NCBI GenBank assembly: GCA_965112735.1
Contig: OZ218952.1
Location: 4,898,001-4,962,000 of the forward strand
DNA from: Phaeosaccion multiseriatum
Taxonomy: Eukaryota; Protista; Ochrophyta, other classes
DNA: 64,000 nucleotides
Direction: 5' to 3'
Shown here: piece after piece, positions 34,533 to 54,523 of the stretch
How the letters are laid out: each line of letters opens with the position of its first letter
Position numbering within the stretch: position 1 is the first letter of the stretch
Translations under genes and position numbers: made by a program
The notes under the pieces: generated by a model
Told to the model about the DNA's origin: nothing
The model's database searches: none
Seen by the model: only the letters and a program-made list of their open reading frames with translations

Positions 34533-35147
34533 ATGGATGCACGAGTTGGAGAGAGTGCTTGCCGCGTGAGCAGCAGCAGTAGCAGCAGCGGCGGCGGCGG
34601 CGGCGGCGGCTGCCGCGGCGGCAAGAAGCGCAGCAAGGAGCGTCCCTTACTTGTCCAAAAGCGCCCTCTGGTGGATCCGGCCTTACGGCAGCCTTTTGGT
34701 CTGCCGTCGTCGAGGCGGCGTACCACCATCGCCGGCACTGGGGGGCAGCCGCCACAGCTTCGCCACCTCTCTTTGGACCTGTCTGTTATCGACAAAACGC
34801 AGCAGCCGCTTGGAGGCCCACAGCCTCCTCAGTGTAGGCCGAGACGCGTTCGTGCCGACCACTCTGTGCCTTTGGCCCGCTTGGCAAATGGATCCTCTCT
34901 CCTCCAGTTTGAAGAACTGCCCTTCCTTGACGAGCCGCTGAAGCGGGATGCGAGGGAGGGGAGAGGGGTGAAGGGGGGAAATCAGCTGGGTGACAAAGAG
35001 GAGGAGCATTTTCCCGACGCCGCCCTCGTGTACCCATCAAAGCCGCCATGCAGTACTGGGCCACGGACGGAATCTCCAAGACGCTGTGGGGGGACTGAAG
35101 ATGACGATGGGGAGCGTTCCGCCAGAGCAAACAGTGCGTTCTTCTGA
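34533..35147 (+). CDS. Orphan low-complexity protein, copy 1 (paralog of 52338-52910)
   Basis: Aligns end to end with copy 2; several indels, all frame-preserving; same stop after NSAFF. Confidence 0.55.
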   Translation: MDARVGESACRVSSSSSSSGGGGGGGCRGGKKRSKERPLLVQKRPLVDPALRQPFGLPSSRRRTTIAGTGGQPPQLRHLSLDLSVIDKTQQPLGGPQPPQCRPRRVRADHSVPLARLANGSSLLQFEELPFLDEPLKRDAREGRGVKGGNQLGDKEEEHFPDAALVYPSKPPCSTGPRTESPRRCGGTEDDDGERSARANSAFF

Positions 35148-42381: not shown

Positions 42382-42602
42382 TCGGCCCTGGAAGAGGTTG
42401 CTTATCAGATTACTGATTACGGCCGGCGCAGCCGGCCTGATTACTGATTACTGCCGGCGCCAGCCGGCCTGATTACTGATTATGGCCGGCGCCAGCCGGG
42501 TCTGATTACTGATTATGACCGGCGCCAGCCGGCCTGATTACTGATTGTGACGGGCGAAAGCCGGCCTGATTACTGATTATACGTAACCTCTTCCAGGGCC
42601 GA
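42382..42602. mobile_element. MITE-1: 18-bp TIRs (TCGGCCCTGGAAGAGGTT), 6-bp TSD CGTCAG, internal ~32-bp tandem array
   Basis: Perfect inverted ends 42382-42399 and 42585-42602; CGTCAG at 42376-42381 and 42603-42608. Confidence 0.85.
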
Positions 42603-42825
42603 CGTCAGCGTCATATATCTCGACAGACCCTGACGTAGACTTTATGGCCACCGGCTCTACCGAAGAGACATCAATTAGCTCTAATGAGCCGTACAGTGTC
42701 ACCTCGTGGTAGTCCATATGGCCACCGGCTCTACCTACCTTCTTTTGCGAAGAGACATCAAAAAATAAAGAACGTGAAAGAAACGGACAGAAACAACGGA
42801 TCGAAACGGCTGTATTGGCTGTGTC

Positions 42826-43011
42826 TGTTGCGATATCTCCTCTACGATGACAGGGACAAGCTAGAGTAGTGTCAACTCGTGTATTAATAATACCTACTGA
42901 GAGATGCGTTCAAGGAAGTGATGGCCGTGGCCATACATGAATATCGATATCCACATCGATATTGTACGTCGATATAGTGCTCAGTCACAAATGGCGATAC
43001 TTATCACAACA
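42826..43011 (-). repeat. Copia 3' LTR
   Basis: Identical to 48124-48309. Confidence 0.97.
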
Positions 43012-43148
43012 CCCTCCTATGACTGAATCACTATCTCTCTTGATAGCTGACACTCTACCACAAACACAATGAGGAAACACCTGACTTGTCCTAAAACCCC
43101 CCCGAGACAAAGTCCTGAAAACCTCATACTAAAACTACTGAACTAAAA

Positions 43149-44756
43149 CTAGTCCCCCCCTTTCCTGTCTCCCTTCTTGAGCATCTGCCCCGCCAGACCG
43201 CTGTGTACCTGAGGTGCCAATGCCTTGGTCATGATGTCCCCAAGCTGGTCCTTTGTGCTGATGTACTGAAACCGAACGTGTCCCTTGTCCACGTGGTACT
43301 GCAGGAAATGATAACGAATGTCGATGTGACGTACGCGCTTGGTGCCCGCGTTGCCATTTGCCATCTGAATGCACCCTTGATTGTCCTCGTGCACAATCGA
43401 CTCCGTCATGTTGGCTCCTGGAAACAGAAACTCCAGAATCCCTCTGTGAAACAGCAACTCCTTCACTGCTTCCGCTGCGGCCATGTACTCACTCTCCATA
43501 GAGCACTGTGCTATGACCTTAAATAGTGTTGCCTTGTGAGCAATCACTCCCCCGCCGAATGTCACGACGTATCCCCCTGAGCTCCTGCGCCTGTCGACGT
43601 CATCTGCCCAGCTCGAGTCTGCGTATGCCTCCAGATGAAGCCCCGCCTCTCGATCAAACTCAATTCCCAAGTCTAAACTACCTCTAAAGTACCCGAAAAT
43701 GCGCTGCAATGCTGCCCAGTGTCGAGGCCCCGGCCTCTTCATAAAACGAGCACACTGCATGATGGCGAAGGATACATCAAGCCTCACCCAGTTGGCAACC
43801 CATAGGATTGACCCTACCGCTGAGCAGTATGGTTTGTCCTGCATGAATTCCTCCTCCTCTGTGGTGCTTGGCTCCATACCCACTGACAAATGTACCCCCT
43901 GCTCTGCTGGTGAGCCGTACACAGGTACCTCCGTCATGTCGAACTTCTCAAGCATCGCTCTAAGATACCCTCCTAGCGAAAGCCTGAGCTGTCCCGCCTC
44001 GAATGCGTAGTCAACTTCAACTCCCAGAAATTTCCCCACATTCGACCCCAAACGCTTCAACTTGAAACGCTCGTCAATCTCCTTGAAAGTGCAGTCAATG
44101 AGATTTCCCTCCCCTGACCCTCCTAGGTCGTCTACATATAGAATGATGAGCCCTATTAGCTCCCCCTCCTCGAACCTGGCGAACAGACACGGATCCACTG
44201 GGCACTGTACCCACCCCATTGCGAGTAGAAATGCCACCACTGTCTCGTTCCACCTCTTGGGAGACTGATGAAGACCGTACAGACTCTTCAACAGCCTCAG
44301 CACCTTCCCGAACTTTCTCATGCCCTCTGGTGCTCTAATGTACACGTACTCCCCCTCATGCAGAGGTGCATGCAGGAAAGCCGTCTCCACATCTGCAAAC
44401 TCCAATACCCACTTCTTCTGGCACGTGATAGCAAAGAACATCTTCATCGTCGAGCTCCCCACCACTGGTGCAAAGGTATCAAAGTAATCCTCCCCCTCGA
44501 TCTGCTCGTTCCCCATCACGACAAATCGACACTTGAGCCTATCCACAAGTCCCCCAGTCACCTTTGCTCTGAATAGCATGACTGTATGCAGCGCATTCAT
44601 CCCCTCTTGATAATCAACCTCCTCCCATACCTGGCGTTGCTCGATCGCGTTGAGCTCTGCCCAGTACGCCTCCGTCCATTGCTCCGCGTACTCTCCTGCT
44701 TGAGCCTGGGCCAGAGACCGCGGTATCGGTACCTCGCTCTCCTTTAGGCCTGGCAT
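43149..44756 (-). CDS. Copia reverse transcriptase-RNase H (ORF3)
   Basis: KCRFVVMGNEQ, ADVETAFLHA, LLKSLYGLHQS, LYVDDLG; RNase H YADSSWA, ESEYMA, EDNQG, RHIDIRYHF. Confidence 0.95.
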   Translation of the reverse strand: MPGLKESEVPIPRSLAQAQAGEYAEQWTEAYWAELNAIEQRQVWEEVDYQEGMNALHTVMLFRAKVTGGLVDRLKCRFVVMGNEQIEGEDYFDTFAPVVGSSTMKMFFAITCQKKWVLEFADVETAFLHAPLHEGEYVYIRAPEGMRKFGKVLRLLKSLYGLHQSPKRWNETVVAFLLAMGWVQCPVDPCLFARFEEGELIGLIILYVDDLGGSGEGNLIDCTFKEIDERFKLKRLGSNVGKFLGVEVDYAFEAGQLRLSLGGYLRAMLEKFDMTEVPVYGSPAEQGVHLSVGMEPSTTEEEEFMQDKPYCSAVGSILWVANWVRLDVSFAIMQCARFMKRPGPRHWAALQRIFGYFRGSLDLGIEFDREAGLHLEAYADSSWADDVDRRRSSGGYVVTFGGGVIAHKATLFKVIAQCSMESEYMAAAEAVKELLFHRGILEFLFPGANMTESIVHEDNQGCIQMANGNAGTKRVRHIDIRYHFLQYHVDKGHVRFQYISTKDQLGDIMTKALAPQVHSGLAGQMLKKGDRKGGD

Positions 44757-44792
44757 CAGAAAGAGTGGGCCTAGTATGGAGGAGACAGCATG

Positions 44793-46751
44793 TCAGTGCT
44801 TGCCGCTACGCGTGCGGCCCAGGCTGGGATCGTGGCCCCAGTCGTGCTCCTTGGCTCCCTTGTCGCCATCTTTGGCCACCTCGTATGTCCAGAGTTTGCC
44901 TCTCTCTGGCGGCTCAGCCTGCTGCGTTGGCTCTTCCTGCTGCTGCTCTGCCTGTTGCTGCTCTGCCTGCTGCTGCTGCTGCTCTTGCTGCTCTACTTGC
45001 TGTTTCTGCTGCTCTCTCTGTTGCTGCTTTGCCGTCTGCTCCCTCTGTTGCCGCTCGGCGTGCTGACGTCGCTCCAGGCCTTCTCCTTCGAGTTGTAACT
45101 TCTCCACGAACTCTCGGGTGAGAACCTGTTCCCAGCGTGATGTCTGTTGCTGCTGTGGGGCTGGCTGTGCCTCCTCTAATCTCGTGTTCCATGTGACGGT
45201 TCCACTCTTGGTCCCGCCCCCACCTCCCCCGCTCGCGCTACTGCTGCTGCTCCTGCTGCTGCTCCTGCTGCTGCTCCCGCTGCTGCTCCTGCTGCTGCTC
45301 CTGCTGCTGCTCCCGCTGCTGCTCCTGCTGCTGCTCCCGCTGCTCGAGGGCTGGTCCTCGTCCTCGCTGTCATCCTCCTTCTCCGCTGTCTCTGGTAGCT
45401 TCCCCTTCTCCACGTGACTCCCGAACACCGTGCCGTCGTGTCTGCGGTTCGTCACGAATGTGTAGGACGAGCTGGAGATGAACCGCTTCTGTGAAGGGAT
45501 GTAGAAAAGGAGACAGGCTGATCTGTGGTTGGGGCTCTGTCCCACGTACACTGCCGAGTGCGTCTTGTCGTTGTGCCACTGCTTGTGCTTCTTGTTGCCC
45601 ACCCGCACCTTCGCCTGCTCTCCGAAGATGTGTAGGTGCTGTAGGTCAGGCTTGCGCTTGAAATACAGCTCGTAGGGGGACTGCTGCTGCCCCCTCCTGC
45701 ACCTGGTGTTGTAGAGAAGCTGCGCCAACTTGTACGCTACGAACCTCAGCTGCTTCGAGTGCTCCTCCAGCTTCGCCTCCTCAATGAAAAGAATAGACAT
45801 TCGCGCCAGCTCCTTGTGTCGAGCCTCGTTCAGTCCGTTCTGCGCTTGACAATTGGGGTCCGTCAGCTTGACCTCAATGCCCTGGGAGTAGAGCATCTTC
45901 TTCGCTGCCTTCGTCTTGATGAGCTCCGATCCGTTGTCTGCTGACAGACACTGCACCTTGTACCCCGCTGTCCTCTCCCCTGGAATGAATACTGTGGTGT
46001 TGAGGTCGTCATACACGCTCTGGAAGTGCGCCTCCGTCTTTCCCCCCACCTTCCTGCACCAGCCCATACCCGTGTGCGGGCAGCACGCCTGCAACACGTG
46101 CTCTCCTTCGAGAGGAATGGTGTCGAGCGTTACCTGTGCCAGCGGTGCCTTGGGGTAGTCGATGAACTGCTTACTCTGAGCTGCCTTCGTCATCTTCACC
46201 TCTGCGCAAGTCTTGCACGGCGCCCTCTTCCCGCACAGTGTCACGCCCTCCAGCTTGGCCTGTCGCCGTAGTTCTTGATCGTTGCGGTGGCCCTTCTTGC
46301 AGTGGTAAGTCATGTAATCACTCCACTGCTCCGTGGCCTCCTCGATCTTGAATTGTAGCATGTCAAGCCCCAGCTCTGGGTCCTGCGTCGTGTGCACCGT
46401 CTCTGGTGCGTCTGCTGAGGGGCCGAAATAGACTGGCTTCCCCGCTGGCCTTGCGCTCCCCCCCAGTAGGTCTGAGAGGTTCTTCTCTGCAAAAATGCAG
46501 AAAGGTACGTCTGGCGACACCACTACCTCCAGCCCCTTCAGTCCTCTTTTGCCGTCGTTGGAGACGTAGCTGATGTTCACCTTCCCTTTGCCCATTATCT
46601 GCGCGTGCGACTTGCCGTCTGCGAGTTGCACTAAACTCTGATGAGCGCAGAAATCGTACAGTCCATCCAAGTTGGGCCACACATTGAGCGCCGATCCGCT
46701 GTCTGCGAGCCCCTGCCGTGTGCCATCCGCCCCCGACTTCAGCTTGGACAT
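44793..46751 (-). CDS. Copia protease-integrase (ORF2) with Ser/Gln-rich tail
   Basis: ADSGSA protease site; YHCKKGH..PCKTC Zn finger; TLDT / ADNGSE / QNGLNE as the DDE core. Confidence 0.9.
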   Translation of the reverse strand: MSKLKSGADGTRQGLADSGSALNVWPNLDGLYDFCAHQSLVQLADGKSHAQIMGKGKVNISYVSNDGKRGLKGLEVVVSPDVPFCIFAEKNLSDLLGGSARPAGKPVYFGPSADAPETVHTTQDPELGLDMLQFKIEEATEQWSDYMTYHCKKGHRNDQELRRQAKLEGVTLCGKRAPCKTCAEVKMTKAAQSKQFIDYPKAPLAQVTLDTIPLEGEHVLQACCPHTGMGWCRKVGGKTEAHFQSVYDDLNTTVFIPGERTAGYKVQCLSADNGSELIKTKAAKKMLYSQGIEVKLTDPNCQAQNGLNEARHKELARMSILFIEEAKLEEHSKQLRFVAYKLAQLLYNTRCRRGQQQSPYELYFKRKPDLQHLHIFGEQAKVRVGNKKHKQWHNDKTHSAVYVGQSPNHRSACLLFYIPSQKRFISSSSYTFVTNRRHDGTVFGSHVEKGKLPETAEKEDDSEDEDQPSSSGSSSRSSSGSSSRSSSRSSSGSSSRSSSRSSSSSASGGGGGGTKSGTVTWNTRLEEAQPAPQQQQTSRWEQVLTREFVEKLQLEGEGLERRQHAERQQREQTAKQQQREQQKQQVEQQEQQQQQAEQQQAEQQQEEPTQQAEPPERGKLWTYEVAKDGDKGAKEHDWGHDPSLGRTRSGKH

Positions 46752-48004
46752 ATGGTAGAGAGAATGGCCGCTCCCCTAGCAAAAGTACGACTTCTAACAC
46801 TCTCCTGTAGCGTCCACGGAATGCTGAAAATGGCGCTGGTGGAGCCTTCCACATGCTCGCCATCTTTCTTCTTCCTGCTGTTTGGGCAGTCTGCACGCTG
46901 GTGCCCCGGCTTGTGGCAGTTGAAACACAGCTCCTCCTTGGACGGACACGTCGTCCGCATGTGTCCCTTTCTCCCACACCTGTAACAGCGTGTGTTGGAC
47001 CGATCTTTCTCTCCTGCCCCTGTGGTGGTCTGTCTACCCCCCCCTGCTGGTTGCTGTGTCTTCTGCCTTTGCTGGTAAATGTGGAAAAGGCCCCGCTCAA
47101 GGTCCTCTCCCGCCTCCCTCGCTTGCGCTTGGAGGTCACTGTCAAACCGCTGCACTTGCTGTTTGAACCGATTAAACTCGTCCTCTGTCTCTACCGAATG
47201 ACCGTGCACTTGGCCGAACGACTCCCATCTCTGCCCCATACGCCTGAGGAACTTGTCCTTGATGATGGAGTAGGACATAGGAAGCTGCTCCTCCGTCATC
47301 AACACGTTGAGTTGGAGAAACTTGTTGAGGTAGGCAAGTCCCGTCTCCCCCACCCCTGGCCTCAGATCGTGCATCTCGGAGGTGAGAAACTCTTGTCGCT
47401 GTGACTGCGTGCTCCCCATCACTGCCTCCTTGATTGCCTGCATCAATAGTACCAGGTCCACTTGGAACCGCGCTGTGCGAGTGCGTTCTTCTATGGCATC
47501 CCTCATGTCCGAGGGAATGGCCTCCAAAATCTTGAGGCCCGTCTGTTGGTACAGACTGAACGTCAGGGCATACTTAGAGTCCCGGGAGGCGTCGTCTGCG
47601 TTGGGGATCTTATCACTATCCACCAAGAATGCCTTTGCCCCCATCCCCCCTATGTGATCCGTGACCGCTCGCATAAATCGCAAGAGAGGCATCACTCCCT
47701 CCGATTCCAACTTCTTGTCAAACTCATTGTTCTTCGGCTTGAACGTGAGTTCTAGCAGCTGCTGTGCTGTACTCCCCCCCCCGCTGGGGGTCACTGTTCC
47801 TCCGACTGAGGAGATAGTGACTGGTGCTGCGGCCGCTGCCGTGGGCACTCCTTGCTGTGTGATGTGTTTGGCCAACGCTGCCGCTATCATCTTTTCCATC
47901 ATTTCAGCCATCTGCTGCTGTGCGTCTCCTTCTATCGCGGAACTCGCACTGACGGGCGCCGCTGCGTCCGCCTTTTCAACGCCTTCTTCTTCCGCGCCTG
48001 GCAT
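46739..48004 (-). CDS. Copia Gag (ORF1) with two CCHC knuckles
   Basis: CYRCGRKGHMRTTC and CFNCHKPGHQRADC, directly downstream of the 5' LTR. Confidence 0.9.
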   Translation of the reverse strand: MPGAEEEGVEKADAAAPVSASSAIEGDAQQQMAEMMEKMIAAALAKHITQQGVPTAAAAAPVTISSVGGTVTPSGGGSTAQQLLELTFKPKNNEFDKKLESEGVMPLLRFMRAVTDHIGGMGAKAFLVDSDKIPNADDASRDSKYALTFSLYQQTGLKILEAIPSDMRDAIEERTRTARFQVDLVLLMQAIKEAVMGSTQSQRQEFLTSEMHDLRPGVGETGLAYLNKFLQLNVLMTEEQLPMSYSIIKDKFLRRMGQRWESFGQVHGHSVETEDEFNRFKQQVQRFDSDLQAQAREAGEDLERGLFHIYQQRQKTQQPAGGGRQTTTGAGEKDRSNTRCYRCGRKGHMRTTCPSKEELCFNCHKPGHQRADCPNSRKKKDGEHVEGSTSAIFSIPWTLQESVRSRTFARGAAILSTICPS

Positions 48005-48123
48005 GGCTAACGAAAGGACTCCTTCTCTCTCACTTGAGTTATCCGACCAAAACTCGCCTGTGTGCCGTCGCCGACTACGTAGAACCAGCTAGCTGTGAAG
48101 TGTCGCGACAGCGACAGCTGTCG

Positions 48124-48309
48124 TGTTGCGATATCTCCTCTACGATGACAGGGACAAGCTAGAGTAGTGTCAACTCGTGTATTAATAATACCTACTGAGA
48201 GATGCGTTCAAGGAAGTGATGGCCGTGGCCATACATGAATATCGATATCCACATCGATATTGTACGTCGATATAGTGCTCAGTCACAAATGGCGATACTT
48301 ATCACAACA
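48124..48309 (-). repeat. Copia 5' LTR
   Basis: Identical to 42826-43011. Confidence 0.97.
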
Positions 48310-48440
48310 GTGTCACCAACACGGGGGACGGGGGCGGGAAGACTTCCGTCTTCCTTTTCCCAAACGTTTAAACCTTTTTCCCGCTCCGTACGTTTGTGCC
48401 CTGATGTCCGTCCTGAGTCCCCACCGAGCAATAGGTGCGG

Positions 48441-51400
48441 AAAGAAAAGAAGAGTTCCGGCACGCAACACCGTGGAGACTGTCGGCACGCAACACCAGAC
48501 ACAGTCTCCCTAGCTCTTCCTCCCTCTTCCACGAGGATCCCGGCTCGCAACACCAGGCGGATCCCCTTGGCCAACACAAGCGCTTTGTCCGGGCCCAGGA
48601 CAAGAGGCTCGCTTTCCACCACACCAGTATCTACTCTCCTCCTTGACAGTGTGTTCCACTCTTCCTGGGCTCTGTCTCCGCCGCCTCAGTAAGTGACAGC
48701 ACACGCCAAGGTCTCTCCTCTTCTGAAAAATCTAAATTCCCTGCTTCACTGACATACTGTACATCTCCCCAGAGGGGACCCCCCCCTTGGGGCGGTACCA
48801 AGCACCTACGCTGACGCTTCGCCCTGCTGGCTCCCATGTCTCCCACCTCGTCCTCGTCTCTGTTCCGCGAGAAACAAAGTTCCGTTGCTGCGCTGCTGAA
48901 CAGGCTTTCGCGCGGTCGCGGCGCTCGGGCGAAGGTGGGAAGCCAGTGAGAGGCCTCCTCCCTTCAGTCGTAGGCGAGGGCCCGGGAGATGTCCGACTCC
49001 CGCTCCAAGGCGTCGCGGTATGCATGCTGAGGACTATCCACATCCACGCCGTGTTCGAGGCCAAGAGGAATAGGGCTGGACTCCCAAGTGCCCACCTGCT
49101 CCGCAGGTGGAGAGGTCGTGGACCAGGGGTAGCTAACGTTGGGGGAAGGACTCATCATTAGTAGGGGGGGGCAGTCCCGTGAGGGAGTCCCACCTCGGGA
49201 GCGCAGAGCGCCTCCAAGGGGGCCGCCTCCATGGAGGGAGGCGGGCACCGGGTTTCGGATGTAGTGGAGCTTGGGGTGCCACCGCAGTGAGCACCCCAAG
49301 TCCCGCTTCACCCCCACCCATCCGAGTACCCACCGGTGCGCTGCGAGGGTGCAGCAGCACCTGCCCCAGCCTAGTCGAGAGCCCACTCTCCCGATCGTAG
49401 TCGGCCGGTACACAAAACACAAAGATACACAAACATTCATACGCACACAGACATAATAATACACATACAGGGGCACCAGTAGACACAGACGCACACCAGT
49501 ACACACACACATACAAACACCCGCCGCGTGTACCGGTGTAGGGCTGCTGGTGCTGTTGCCAAGGGCTGCGCTCCCCGCTGCTGGGGGAGGAATGATGGCG
49601 AGGGAGGAGCCGCTGGTGTCGCCACGGGCAGAGTCAGTGTCCTTTGAAGAGGTCCCTTCGCACGTCCCCTGCTGACCATCACACACCCCCCACTCGCTTG
49701 GGATGGTGTGCTGGGGGGAGGCGAGCCACTGAGCGAAATACACTGCGCAGTCCTCTGGCACGGCTGGTGGAAGCAGCAAAGCGCGCCCAAACCAGCAAAT
49801 TCGGATTCTTTCCGGAATCACAGATCCAGAAGTGTCCATATATCCAACCCCTGTAGAAAAGCCGAAAATGCCCTCACAGAAGCGCTCATGTTTCCGCTCC
49901 AAGCTCTTTGAACATCAACTCGTAGAAGTTACCCTTCTGCACACGCCGTACCAAGACCACTCCGCTGCGATTCCAACCGTCCGCCGCGGACTTCCGCTGT
50001 ACCAGCTGAGCAATACAACGAATGCAAAACACCTCGGTGCTGCGGGCCCGAAAAATGAACAAGTCCAATATCTCAAGCGCGGCGGCATCAATCCCTCGAC
50101 CACCGAGCACGATAGCAAGAGGGTAGTCCATCCATACTACTGCAAGTGAGTCGTGCAAGCAGAGCGAGCCACAAGCCCTGTTCTCTCCCATCCTCCATGT
50201 TCACACCGCTCACGAGCCCCAACGCCGAAAAATCCATCACCTTCTCTTCTGCATCACAGGCAGGCCCCGACTTCCACTCCATAGCTGTGGTGAACGACCA
50301 AACGTCATGCTTCCGCCGTCCATTACAGATAAGTAGCCAGATTGCTCAATGCCCCAATTTCCTTCAGCACCGGACGACGTACATCGCCGTACACTCCGTA
50401 GACGGTCACCAAACGCTGCCGTACCTCCCGAAATGCGAGTACCGTGCACTCCCAATGCCGCCTTCCAATTCCCAATTCTCCCTCGTATGCTGTGCCTCTC
50501 TTGTCGCCCATCGGTTCGCTGTTATGGCCACAGGTCCCATATCCGCTCCACACGCAAACTAGAGGCGCCAACCACCATCAAAGGGCTCTCCGGTTCCTTC
50601 CAACAGCCCGAATAGCTGCCTTCGCATCCATGCTGCCACCTTTGACGCTCGTACTAACTGCCTGGCGGTTGCTGTTTGTCCTGAGAGCTGAGCCTCCATC
50701 GGACCCCCCCCCTCCCCCTCCCATGCGTTCGAGATGGTGAGGGAGGTACAGCTGTAGTCCGTCTCCTTCCCTTCGCCGCTCCTCGGCCCGATATGTCTCT
50801 CGGATGTAGCTGCCGGAGGTGAGCCGTGCGAGCTCCCGTATCGAAGGTCAGCTACGCCCCCACCCATCCAGAGAGACTGCAGGCAAGCCCAGTGGCGACC
50901 ACGTACGCCTCCTTCTGGCCATACTGCTGTTGTAGGTGGGAGACACTCCAACAACAAGGGAGGTACACTTAAACACGCAGACGTACACAAACATTCACAG
51001 GCACACAGACATAGACAAAGGCACAATACAGGGACACCAGGACCCACAAACGCACACTAGCACACACAGACGCAGACCAGCACACACAGATACAAACACA
51101 CATCGTGTGTAGGGGCAGTGACCACGGCTGCTGTTGCCTGGGACTGCCCCGCCCCCCGCTGAGGGCCGGAATGGCGAGGGATGAGCCGCTGTTGTCACCG
51201 CGCGCAGAGCCAGCCTCCTTTGTGGAGGAGGCCCTTATTCGCACGCCAAACACAGGAAATACGCACCCTACACACAGAAACACCGTCTGGACATACACAC
51301 ACAAACATACAGACAGACACCTGGAAGAGCTAAGGGGCCTGCCGTCACCCGGGAGCCCCTTTCGCCTCGCAAAAAGACAAAAAATGCCGTGGACCACCCC

Positions 51401-52078
51401 CCCCAAACCTTGGGCCACGGGAGAGAGGAGAGGGCGGAGAGATGAGTAGGGCGTCGGCCTCAACACCGGACGCGGATCCTACGGCGATACCAGCAAGGAA
51501 GAAAGGGCGCAGAGGGCAAAAGGCGCCGGCACGCAACACCGTGGAGGCGGTCGGCACGCAACACCAGACACCGCTTGTCCCAAGCCATAGAGCCCCGCAA
51601 CACCGGCAAAGGAAAGAAAAGAAGAGTTCCGGCACGCAACACCGTGGAGACTGTCGGCACGCAACACCAGACACAGTCTCCCTAGCTCTTCCTCCCTCTT
51701 CCACGAGGATCCCGGCTCGCAACACCAGGCGGATCCCCTTGGCCAACACAAGCGCTTTGTCCGGGCCCAGGACAAGAGGCTCGCTTTCCACCACACCAGT
51801 ATCTACTCTCCTCCTTGACAGTGTGTTCCACTCTTCCTGGGCTCTGTCTCCGCCGCCTCAGTAAGTGACAGCACACGCCAAGGTCTCTCCTCTTCTGAAA
51901 AATCTAAATTCCCTGCTTCACTGACATACTGTACATCTCCCCAGAGGGGACCCCCCCCTTGGGGCGGTACCAAGCACCTACGCTGACGCTTCGCCCTGCT
52001 GGCTCCCATGTCTCCCACCTCGTCCTCGTCTCTGTTCCGCGAGAAACAAAGTTCCGTTGCTGCGCTGCTGAACAGGCT
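48441..52078. mobile_element. Unclassified 3.6-kb insertion with 466-bp terminal direct repeats (48441-48906, 51613-52078) flanked by a 232-bp duplication
   Basis: Repeats appear identical at offset 3172. Flank 42720-42825 plus 48315-48440 equals 52079-52310. No recognisable enzyme ORF inside. Confidence 0.75.
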
Positions 52079-52337
52079 GGCCACCGGCTCTACCTACCTT
52101 CTTTTGCGAAGAGACATCAAAAAATAAAGAACGTGAAAGAAACGGACAGAAACAACGGATCGAAACGGCTGTATTGGCTGTGTCACCAACACGGGGGACG
52201 GGGGCGGGAAGACTTCCGTCTTCCTTTTCCCAAACGTTTAAACCTTTTTCCCGCTCCGTACGTTTGTGCCCTGATGTCCGTCCTGAGTCCCCACCGAGCA
52301 ATAGGTGCGGCCAATCTATCTCCTCTCCTCTAGGAAC

Positions 52338-52910
52338 ATGGATGCTGAAGCTGGAGAAAGAACTTGCCGCGTGAGCAGCAGCAGCAGTAGCAGCAGCAGC
52401 GGCGGCGGCGGCAAGAAGCACAGCAGGAAGCGTGCCCTAATTGTCCGAAAGCGTGGCCTGCCGTCGTCGAGGCGGCGTACCATCACCACCACCATCGCCG
52501 GCATTGGGGGGCAGCCGCCACAGCTTCGCCGCCTCTCCTTGGACCTGTCCGTCATCGACAAAACGCAGCAGCCGCTTGGAGGCCCACAGCCTCCTCAGTG
52601 TAGGCCGAGACGCGTTCGTGCCAACTCTGTGCCTGTGGCCGTCTTGGCAACAAGTGGATCCGCTCTCCTTCAGTTTGACGAACTGCCCTTACTTGAAGAG
52701 CAGCTGAAGCGGGATGCGAAGGAAGGGAGGCGGGTGAAGGGGGATAATCAGCTGGGCGACAAGCAGGAGGAGCCCTTTCCCGCCTCCCTCGTGTACCCAA
52801 TAATGGCGCCATGCAGTAGTGGGCCACGGACGGAATCTCCAAGACGCTGTGGGGGGACTGAAGATGACGATGGGGAGCGTCCCAACAGAGCCAACAGTGC
52901 GTTCTTCTGA
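52338..52910 (+). CDS. Orphan low-complexity protein, copy 2
   Basis: Frame-conserved paralog of 34533-35147 (LSLDLSVIDKTQQPLGGPQPPQCRPRRVR shared). Confidence 0.55.
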   Translation: MDAEAGERTCRVSSSSSSSSSGGGGKKHSRKRALIVRKRGLPSSRRRTITTTIAGIGGQPPQLRRLSLDLSVIDKTQQPLGGPQPPQCRPRRVRANSVPVAVLATSGSALLQFDELPLLEEQLKRDAKEGRRVKGDNQLGDKQEEPFPASLVYPIMAPCSSGPRTESPRRCGGTEDDDGERPNRANSAFF

Positions 52911-53545
52911 AGCAGCGCACCGTACCATCCCTCCCCAGGCCCTGCAACAAGTAATGGATTGTAGCCCGGGAAGAGAATGTAGGCCAAGTGGACAACGGCA
53001 AGGCGAAGATGGCACCAAGCCGCGTCCAGAATGACAAGACAGAGAGAGCGCCGGGTGAGGAGCTGAGCAGCTGGCGCGTCACCTGTAAGCACTCACTCAC
53101 GTATTGTACAGGGGGTTGGGTAGGGATGTATTCGATGATTCAGATAGAGGAAGCGGGAGGGGAAGAACGCGCCACCGCATTTCGGGAGGCAGAAGCAACT
53201 GCAGTACCACCAGAGCGGCAGACTCTTCCTTTGGGGGCGGGGGGGTTATGTAATGAAGTATGTATGGGCTGCCAAGTTTTATTTTACAATGGCGTGTATG
53301 TTGGACGGAAGTCAAAAGGCGAAATCAATTGGGCAATGGAAGAGGCAAGGCAGCGGTGCGGCAGCAGCAGCAGCAGCAGCAGCAGCTGCAGGAGAAGGAG
53401 GACGAGCTCCATCACCAGCCAGCATCAGCGCCAACAGCGGCAGCAGTTGGTGATACAGCAACAGCCCGCTGACGATGAGACATACTGCAGTGGAACTTTA
53501 GACTCTCCAAGAAGTCGCTCTTCAAGTTTCGTGGCTATATCGTGA

Positions 53546-53778
53546 TCGACCCCTGACACACTATCCGCTATCCGCTATCGCCGGCGCCAGCCGGCGCGCT
53601 ATCCGCTATCGGCAGCGTCAGCCGGCTTTGGGGGGGGGGGGGGGGGTTGTTGGGGCGTGCTATCCGCCAGCCGGCGCGCTATCCGCTATCGGCCGGCGCC
53701 AGCCGGCACGCTATCCGCTATCGGCCGCGGCCGATAGCGCGCTATCGAGAATGTGGGCGATAGTGTGTCAGGGGTCGA
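53546..53778. mobile_element. MITE-2: 20-bp TIRs (TCGACCCCTGACACACTATC), 6-bp TSD TCGTGA
   Basis: Perfect inverted ends 53546-53565 and 53759-53778; TCGTGA at 53540-53545 and 53779-53784; internal CGCTATC and GCCGGCGCCAGCCGGC repeats. Confidence 0.85.
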
Positions 53779-54523
53779 TCGTGACTGACTCACTCTCACC
53801 GCGGCAGAGGGCCCCTCAGCGGCGATGGGGCCCTAGTCCCGACGTGCAGCACCGGCAAGCAACAGCAGACAGGCAGCAGGCAGAGCCAGGGTGGCTGCTG
53901 GACGAGTGAGCTTGTGGCGTCCTCGTCCTTTTTTTATGTTATATTTTTTCCATTCGTGTGTTGAGGTAGCTAAGGGGCTCTTTTTGTCTCTTTCTGTCTG
54001 CGCCTGCTGGAATCGAGAGGGAGGGCCGCAGGTAGGAGCTCTTGCTGTAAGTAGCGCACCTAGGACATACATCAATGGCCCCAACGTGTAGGCAACATCG
54101 ATGCAAGCAGGTGCAGCTAATGGCACTCGATATTTTCCCGCTCCCTGGTCTGTTCGCACGCAGCCAAAACTCTCACTACCGAGCTTCTACGCCCAAGACT
54201 GCGATTGTGATTTTCCCTTCCCTCTTCCATCATGAAAATAGAAATAGTTGTAGAGAGAGGAGGGGGAACAACGAGAAGAGAAGTTGAAGAGAGAATAATT
54301 TGAACTTCGAAATTCGAAGAGAGGATGGCACCAGACGGTGAAAGGGGGTGTCAATCGATGGCGACAGCCTCCTCACCGTGAGAGAGGCGGGACTTTATTC
54401 AGGAAAGCATGACCCCCAAAGGTCGAGCAGCTGCAGGAGGCAGTCAAAAGAACGAAGGGAGGGAGTGGAGAGCTTTCTGTATCGAGTAGGGCTCAGAAGA
54501 GGAGGGGTAGGGGGGCAGGGGGG

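Follow-up and report, generated by a model that had tools for sequence, protein, structure and literature searches.

The array locus and its surroundings

The window, that is, the whole stretch of 64,000 nucleotides that was analysed, is eukaryotic nuclear DNA with a G+C content of ~58% and is very rich in simple repeats (345 rows of Tandem Repeats Finder output). The genes that were recognised in it by Pfam encode an amino-acid transporter, NIF3, a pantothenate-kinase-like protein and PEX1-like AAA ATPases. The best relatives of the transporter are those of the brown algae Pylaiella, Ascophyllum and Ectocarpus, at 56-58% identity, followed by those of oomycetes, and the host is therefore a stramenopile alga that is related to the sequenced brown algae but falls outside them. 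The features of the locus studied here are the following, with positions numbered along the window:

51451-51776, + strand: motif array, eight copies close to CGGCACGCAACACC (from motif counts and self-comparison)
51611-52078, + strand: segment S, 468 bp, comprising the array's right half and the bases downstream of it, including a GTAAGT donor-like site at 51861
48439-48906, + strand: second copy of S, 100% identical, with motif units 5-8 at 48457-48580
52078-52310, + strand: segments P and R, contiguous, ~233 bp, which hold the empty copia target site (52180-52184)
42826-48309, - strand: Ty1/copia LTR retrotransposon (zinc-knuckle, integrase SH3-like and RVT_2 domains)
49771-50688, - strand: non-coding repeat relic in Z, the spacer between the S copies, 84% identical to Logan contig L122
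51861-52333, + strand: putative intron of the 5' leader, running from GTAAGT to a pyrimidine tract and AG (sequence-only model)
52338-52910, + strand: probable orphan gene, 190 aa, of low complexity (from the ORF and comparison with a paralogue)

The array lies about 90-410 bp upstream of the GTAAGT donor, its end being 85 bp from it, and ~560-890 bp upstream of the 190-aa ORF, and its + strand is the sense strand of this downstream gene. The putative splice acceptor AG ends at 52333, 4 nt before the ATG at 52338. Comparison of the ORF with its paralogue (34533-35147, 204 aa) showed ~81% identity from the ATG to ~70 bp past the shared stop. The six indels that separate the two ORFs all have lengths divisible by three, and two of them fall in triplet repeats; codon positions 1, 2 and 3 carry similar numbers of substitutions (19, 17 and 20, respectively). 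A full HMMER search of 1.84 billion representatives returned no relatives of the 190-aa protein, no Pfam domain was found in it, and the motif of the array is absent upstream of the paralogue. The segment at 52338-52910 is probably a fast-evolving orphan gene, and the array would then be located in its promoter or in its leader, the sequence being compatible with either.

Comparison of the window with itself showed that the two copies of S are direct repeats located 3172 bp apart, with a spacer of ~2.7 kb between them. The bases of P (52078-52184) are identical to 42719-42825 and those of R (52180-52310) are identical to 48310-48440, and these left-hand copies of P and R flank the copia element. 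Taken together, the ~700 bp of 51611-52310 have a 100% identical counterpart 2.7 kb to the left, in a circularly permuted order (P-R, then S), and the junctions show microhomology of 1-2 nt. The higher-order unit of the array is cut by the left edge of S, which leaves motif units 1-4 outside S, so that the right-hand locus holds the complete array and the left-hand one a truncated exact copy. An earlier sequence-only reading of this DNA had reported that four of the units recur in a repeat to the left, and they do so within the 468-bp copy of S; since this copy is 100% identical, it adds no independent evidence for covariation. Either the permuted duplicate arose very recently, by rearrangement through a circular intermediate or template switching, or it is an artefact of the assembly. 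A degenerate copy of the first 17 nt of P and of the 13-nt block that follows them was also observed at 42645-42680, 74 bp upstream of the full copy.

The LTRs of the copia element are 186 bp long and 100% identical, and a 5-bp target duplication borders the element. Two interruptions, one change of frame and one internal stop, occur in its coding region, and an exact look-up of one of its ORFs found no record. In the right-hand, complete copy the target (52180-52184) is uninterrupted and the element is missing. Since it has LTRs and a target duplication of its own and is missing there, the copia element is a separate and very young insertion into the left copy, a neighbour of the array rather than a part of it. 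The sequence-only reading had suggested that the array is a packaging, replication or decoy signal of an undescribed mobile or non-coding RNA; a packaging or decoy role tied to a mobile element finds no support, the only intact-looking element nearby being this independent insertion. The insertion lies ~150 bp from the left array copy. The inner 7 nt of one copia LTR terminus are the same as the core of the array motif, an observation made post hoc that may be due to chance.

The relic in spacer Z matches bases 187-1097 of contig L122 (run SRR29999183) over 922 bp of DNA. Minus-strand ORF pieces in Z are protein-like, one of them having a 76% identical Logan relative in a search that covered one putative exon. 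A gene in Z was rejected on account of substitutions that are even over the codon phases and by frameshifting indels, as is found in a repeat relic. Diverged direct repeats (49298-49652 and 50844-51228, ~71-83% identity) flank this 0.9-kb segment, which, with its repeats, looks like the relic of an old repeat element. No Pfam domain was found in the ORFs between 48964 and 53545, those of Z included, and no Rep-type gene, as would be expected beside a rolling-circle origin, was found among them.

The array and S were also searched for terminal inverted repeats, such as those of a DNA transposon or MITE, and no inverted copy of the array or of the ends of S was found. The only inverted repeat near the array is an imperfect one of 19 nt (51323-51341 and 51674-51692, 84% complementary), which brackets motif units 1-6 and may be a chance occurrence. 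Further downstream, a 237-bp MITE-like element is located at 53544-53780, with terminal inverted repeats of 22 nt that are perfect; it is the sole copy in the window, and its interior contains four to five copies close to CGCTATCCGCTATCGGC and a long G run.

Motif copies, hairpins and searches for relatives

The motif array is real. In its full form the motif is CGGCACGCAACACC, 14 bases long, and eight copies centred on CAACA are located at 51461-51748, within ~300 bases. The CAACA sequences start at positions 51461, 51534, 51559, 51598, 51637, 51662, 51720 and 51744 of the + strand. Four of the eight units are exact, one has a single mismatch, one has three mismatches and two are degenerate CAACA copies. 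The 9-mer CGCAACACC occurs nine times in the window, compared with 0.49 occurrences expected from shuffled sequence, a count of nine being reached in none of the 100 shuffles. All of its occurrences are confined to the array (51461-51748) and to its exact partial copy (9-mers at 48463-48554), so that the motif is over-represented and clustered, at one locus and its duplicate, in the manner of a homotypic cluster of sites. Every copy is on the + strand, in the array and in the duplicate alike. The copies are spaced by 73, 25, 39, 39, 25, 58 and 24 nt, in which no helical phasing was seen over the eight copies. These spacings are not multiples of three, which rules out a coding or peptide repeat.

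The array also contains a higher-order tandem duplication with a period of 103. A 46-nt doublet made of two motif copies is present twice, 103 nt apart, and is identical at 44 of its 46 positions (2 differences). In both units a purine-rich stretch stands before the doublet and a third motif copy, with the same core in each, comes after it; outside these blocks the two units cannot be aligned. Identical motif blocks between diverged spacers look like footprints, as judged from the sequence.

Four hairpins of the array are listed here:

51545-51576, + strand: hairpin I, stem of 7 bp, one of them a G-T pair, and loop of 18 nt bearing the motif
51646-51681, + strand: hairpin II, perfect 9-bp stem with the same 18-nt loop as hairpin I
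51707-51736, + strand: hairpin III, 6-bp stem with an 18-nt loop that differs at 2 positions
51451-51473, + strand: variant hairpin, 5 + 2 bp with a bulge, a degenerate motif copy, weakly matched by the covariance model (E = 0.46)

Hairpins I to III, described in the sequence-only reading as a common core closed by different complementary stems, are present with the stems that it quoted. They have a common architecture, in which the stem abuts an 18-nt loop and 16 of the 18 loop positions are invariant. The stem of hairpin III is unrelated in sequence to those of hairpins I and II. Hairpin II is a tandem paralogue of hairpin I, from which it differs by two fully compensated pairs and by one change that gives a G-T pair. 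All five differences between the two are located in the 16 arm positions out of 55 and none in the other 39; if differences were spread evenly, the chance of all five falling in the arms would be ~0.002. The G-T pairs, which are the only pairs that are not Watson-Crick, occur on the + strand and would read A-C on the opposite strand.

In an alignment of hairpins I to III, standard pairs occupied 89% of the pair cells, compared with 69% after column shuffling and 43-56% after sliding of the partners, and only 0-1 of 500 shuffles reached the observed pairing scores. Five of the nine stem pairs were changed on both sides. Pairing is thus kept through two-sided changes, as in a hairpin array, on the basis of three paralogous units at one locus. 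Compensated pairs in three units are hard to obtain by chance and would fit a function of the single strand.

The other copies gave a different result. For each CAACA, we determined the longest perfect stem enclosing it, with the loop limited to 24 nt, and obtained 9, 6, 5, 5, 4, 4, 4 and 3 bp for the eight copies. Among 4000 random positions of the window, stems of at least 4 bp were found at 42%, of at least 5 bp at 15%, of at least 6 bp at 5% and of at least 9 bp at 0.35%. The stems of the remaining five copies of the array (3-5 bp) are therefore at the chance level, and there are three or four true hairpins rather than eight. With 3 stems of 6 bp or more in 350 nt, the array region is ordinary in its stem density, 21% of windows reaching this number. 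The count of about eight stem-loops in ~320 bp given in the sequence-only reading was thus too high, three hairpins having stems of 6-9 bp. Its description of a conserved loop on stems that differ but stay complementary holds up for these three units, with their five compensated pairs, and fails for the remaining copies.

Folding was no better than that of dinucleotide shuffles, either for the 341-nt region (z = +0.83 for the + strand RNA, -0.19 for the - strand RNA and -0.19 for DNA) or for any single hairpin (z from +0.9 to -1.5). The sequence-only reading had staked its case on folding beyond that of such shuffles, and this was seen neither for the region nor for any hairpin. It had also proposed searches with Rfam and with a covariance model, and these returned nothing beyond the locus. 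Rfam gave no match over the whole window at the gathering score and none over 42500-52400 at E <= 1, a search that included the iron-responsive element (IRE), ribozymes and snoRNAs. A covariance model of the 36-nt hairpin unit, searched against the 64-kb window, retrieved the three units and their exact duplicates only, with the next match at E = 0.27.

Scans of metagenomic and viral contigs for the motif gave only unrelated tandem repeats or chance matches. Two motif copies 11 nt apart were found in four metagenomic contigs, which represent one high-GC bacterial locus where a 25-bp tandem duplication lies between flanks unrelated to the array, and this was rejected as a chance match. In viral contigs, the 14-mer gave isolated chance matches only. 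Three 9-mers gave 27 matches, all simple tandem repeats with different flanks and unrelated to the array; most of their periods are multiples of three, mostly 9-48 nt, and they are probably coding repeats. A word-based protein search with the ORF spanning the array returned no relatives, and a literature search for the motif strings found nothing relevant. As no independent copies were found in the window or in the searched collections, the covariation is supported by three paralogous units of a single locus.

Explanations for the array

The reading that we prefer, with a rough probability of 0.35, is that the array is a lineage-specific cluster of cis elements on host DNA that docks one sequence-specific factor. 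One recognition sequence of 14-16 nt would have been multiplied by local duplication to eight same-strand copies within ~300 bp. Located in the 5' flank of the orphan gene, these copies would hold several molecules of this factor at once, and the activity of that locus would be set in this way. We infer that a protein would bind the motif on double-stranded DNA and that the target would be the downstream gene; the complementary arms of three copies would be kept by replication template switching and not by selection. The excess of the motif, its single orientation, the identical blocks and the confinement of the differences between hairpins I and II to the arms argue for constraint on the motif and for a protein that reads it. 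The motif is common to all eight copies, five of which have no stem beyond chance, so that the motif, not the hairpin, is the common denominator. A cluster of DNA sites fits all eight copies, and such clusters are the commonest kind of array. The excess of the 9-mer, found only at the locus and its duplicate, its presence on a single strand and the footprint-like blocks favour this reading, as do the GTAAGT and the pyrimidine tract with AG in front of an ORF that keeps its frame, the ordinary folding and the lack of an Rfam family. However, binding to double-stranded DNA leaves unexplained the complementarity of the arms, in which five of nine pairs are compensated, and the location in the arms of all I/II differences, with none in the other 39 positions. 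The paralogous gene at 34533 also has no copy of the motif in its upstream region. Both the intron and the transcription start are putative, the coding status of the gene is only probable, and its ORF is without relatives among the 1.84 billion representatives and has substitutions that are even over codon positions.

The arms are better accounted for if the array works in single-stranded form. The likeliest such form would be + strand RNA, within a leader or upstream transcript in which at least three hairpins would form a multivalent platform for one RNA-binding protein. We consider this possible, and it is nearly level with the cluster on DNA. Equal loop lengths, 16 invariant loop positions out of 18 on unrelated stems, the pairing of 89% that shuffled and slid controls do not approach, with five of nine pairs compensated, and paralogous hairpins that differ only in their arms are what such a platform would show, and the strand on which G-T rather than A-C is read is the sense strand of the downstream gene. 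This support nevertheless comes from three sequences only, which are paralogues at one locus and have no further copy in the 64 kb or in the searched collections. The region and each hairpin are no more stable than shuffles, five of the eight motif copies have stems at the chance level, no Rfam family matches even at E = 1 and the transcript is a predicted one. Moreover, compensated hairpin arms can arise from replication template switching, in a single mutational step and with no need of selection (PMC8794818; PMC8604942). A narrower version seems to us unlikely: a stramenopile-specific hairpin array, unrelated to described RNA families, in which the 18-nt loop is shown at least three times on covarying stems and further copies stand in smaller loops, and which, as part of a + strand transcript upstream of the orphan gene, would dock an RNA- or ssDNA-binding protein.

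Template switching, together with local duplication, could also have produced the whole array as a neutral, minisatellite-like sequence devoid of function in an unstable stretch full of repeats, and the permuted copy may be an assembly artefact. The higher-order tandem duplication, the circularly permuted 700-bp duplicate at 100% identity, a window extremely rich in simple repeats (the 345 rows noted above), folding at the level of shuffles and the failure to find relatives in the window or in the searched collections are all in keeping with such an origin. We regard it as doubtful, since the motif blocks are identical between spacers that have diverged beyond alignment, all five I/II differences fall in 16 of 55 positions (chance of ~0.002 when spread evenly) and complementarity is kept in three stems. 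The hairpins do resemble those made by template switching in being short inverted repeats with arms that change together, at a locus with other signs of template-switch or end-joining rearrangement, but this mechanism alone leaves unexplained an invariant 18-nt spacer between arms that differ.

Least probable, in our opinion, is that the array is part of a repeat, such as an uncharacterised non-autonomous retroelement, of which S would be the long terminal repeat and the motifs U3-type enhancer repeats, as in LTR U3 regions, TRIM-like elements or retrozymes. Two direct repeats of 468 bp, identical and starting with motif repeats, do enclose an internal region (48439-48906 and 51611-52078, 3172 bp apart). 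A 19-nt purine run is located at the left edge of S, and P, which starts right after S, begins with a primer-binding-like TGG; a degenerate second copy of its start precedes position 42719 by 74 bp. A copy made from a circular intermediate would show the circular permutation seen in the 700-bp unit, and the surroundings are rich in repeats (the copia element, the relic in Z and the MITE-like element). But S has no TG..CA termini and no target duplication, its left edge cuts an array unit and leaves units 1-4 outside, and the sequence that follows the left S is unlike P. The purine run is inside the repeat and is one kind of run that occurs 65 times on this strand of the window, and the junction microhomologies of 1-2 nt are those of end-joining or template-switch rearrangements. 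No Pfam domain was found in the ORFs of Z, and no hammerhead, other ribozyme or other RNA family was detected; a retrozyme was rejected on the lack of an Rfam match at E <= 1 over 42500-52400. A tRNA-related element was likewise rejected, no tRNA gene being present in the window.

Known systems and significance

As a cluster of cis elements, the array is closest to homotypic clusters of transcription-factor sites and to promoter tandem repeats. In both, a few hundred bp of the 5' flank of a gene contain one motif repeated many times on the same strand, growth occurs by local duplication and conserved motif blocks are separated by diverged spacers. Three copies of the array are enclosed by covarying inverted repeats, however, which such clusters need not have, and the factor, the transcription start and the target gene of the array are putative.

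The transferrin-receptor mRNA contains five iron-responsive elements, which are stem-loops with a conserved loop on variable stems. The array can be likened to it in presenting several hairpins within a few hundred nt, a conserved loop on free complementary stems and a possible multivalent docking of one protein. It differs in that its loop is 18 nt long rather than short and apical, that no Rfam match to the IRE was obtained at E <= 1 and that three units qualify.

As matters stand, the value of the finding is local, to one locus in one genome. This locus records very recent genome dynamics, with a copia element bearing identical LTRs beside its own empty site and a permuted 700-bp duplicate. 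To our knowledge, very few cis-regulatory elements have been defined in brown-alga-like stramenopiles. If it is functional, the array would provide a ready-made 14-nt recognition sequence in eight copies, and it would be a small natural test of whether the complementarity of hairpin arms results from selection on a transcript or from template-switch mutation.
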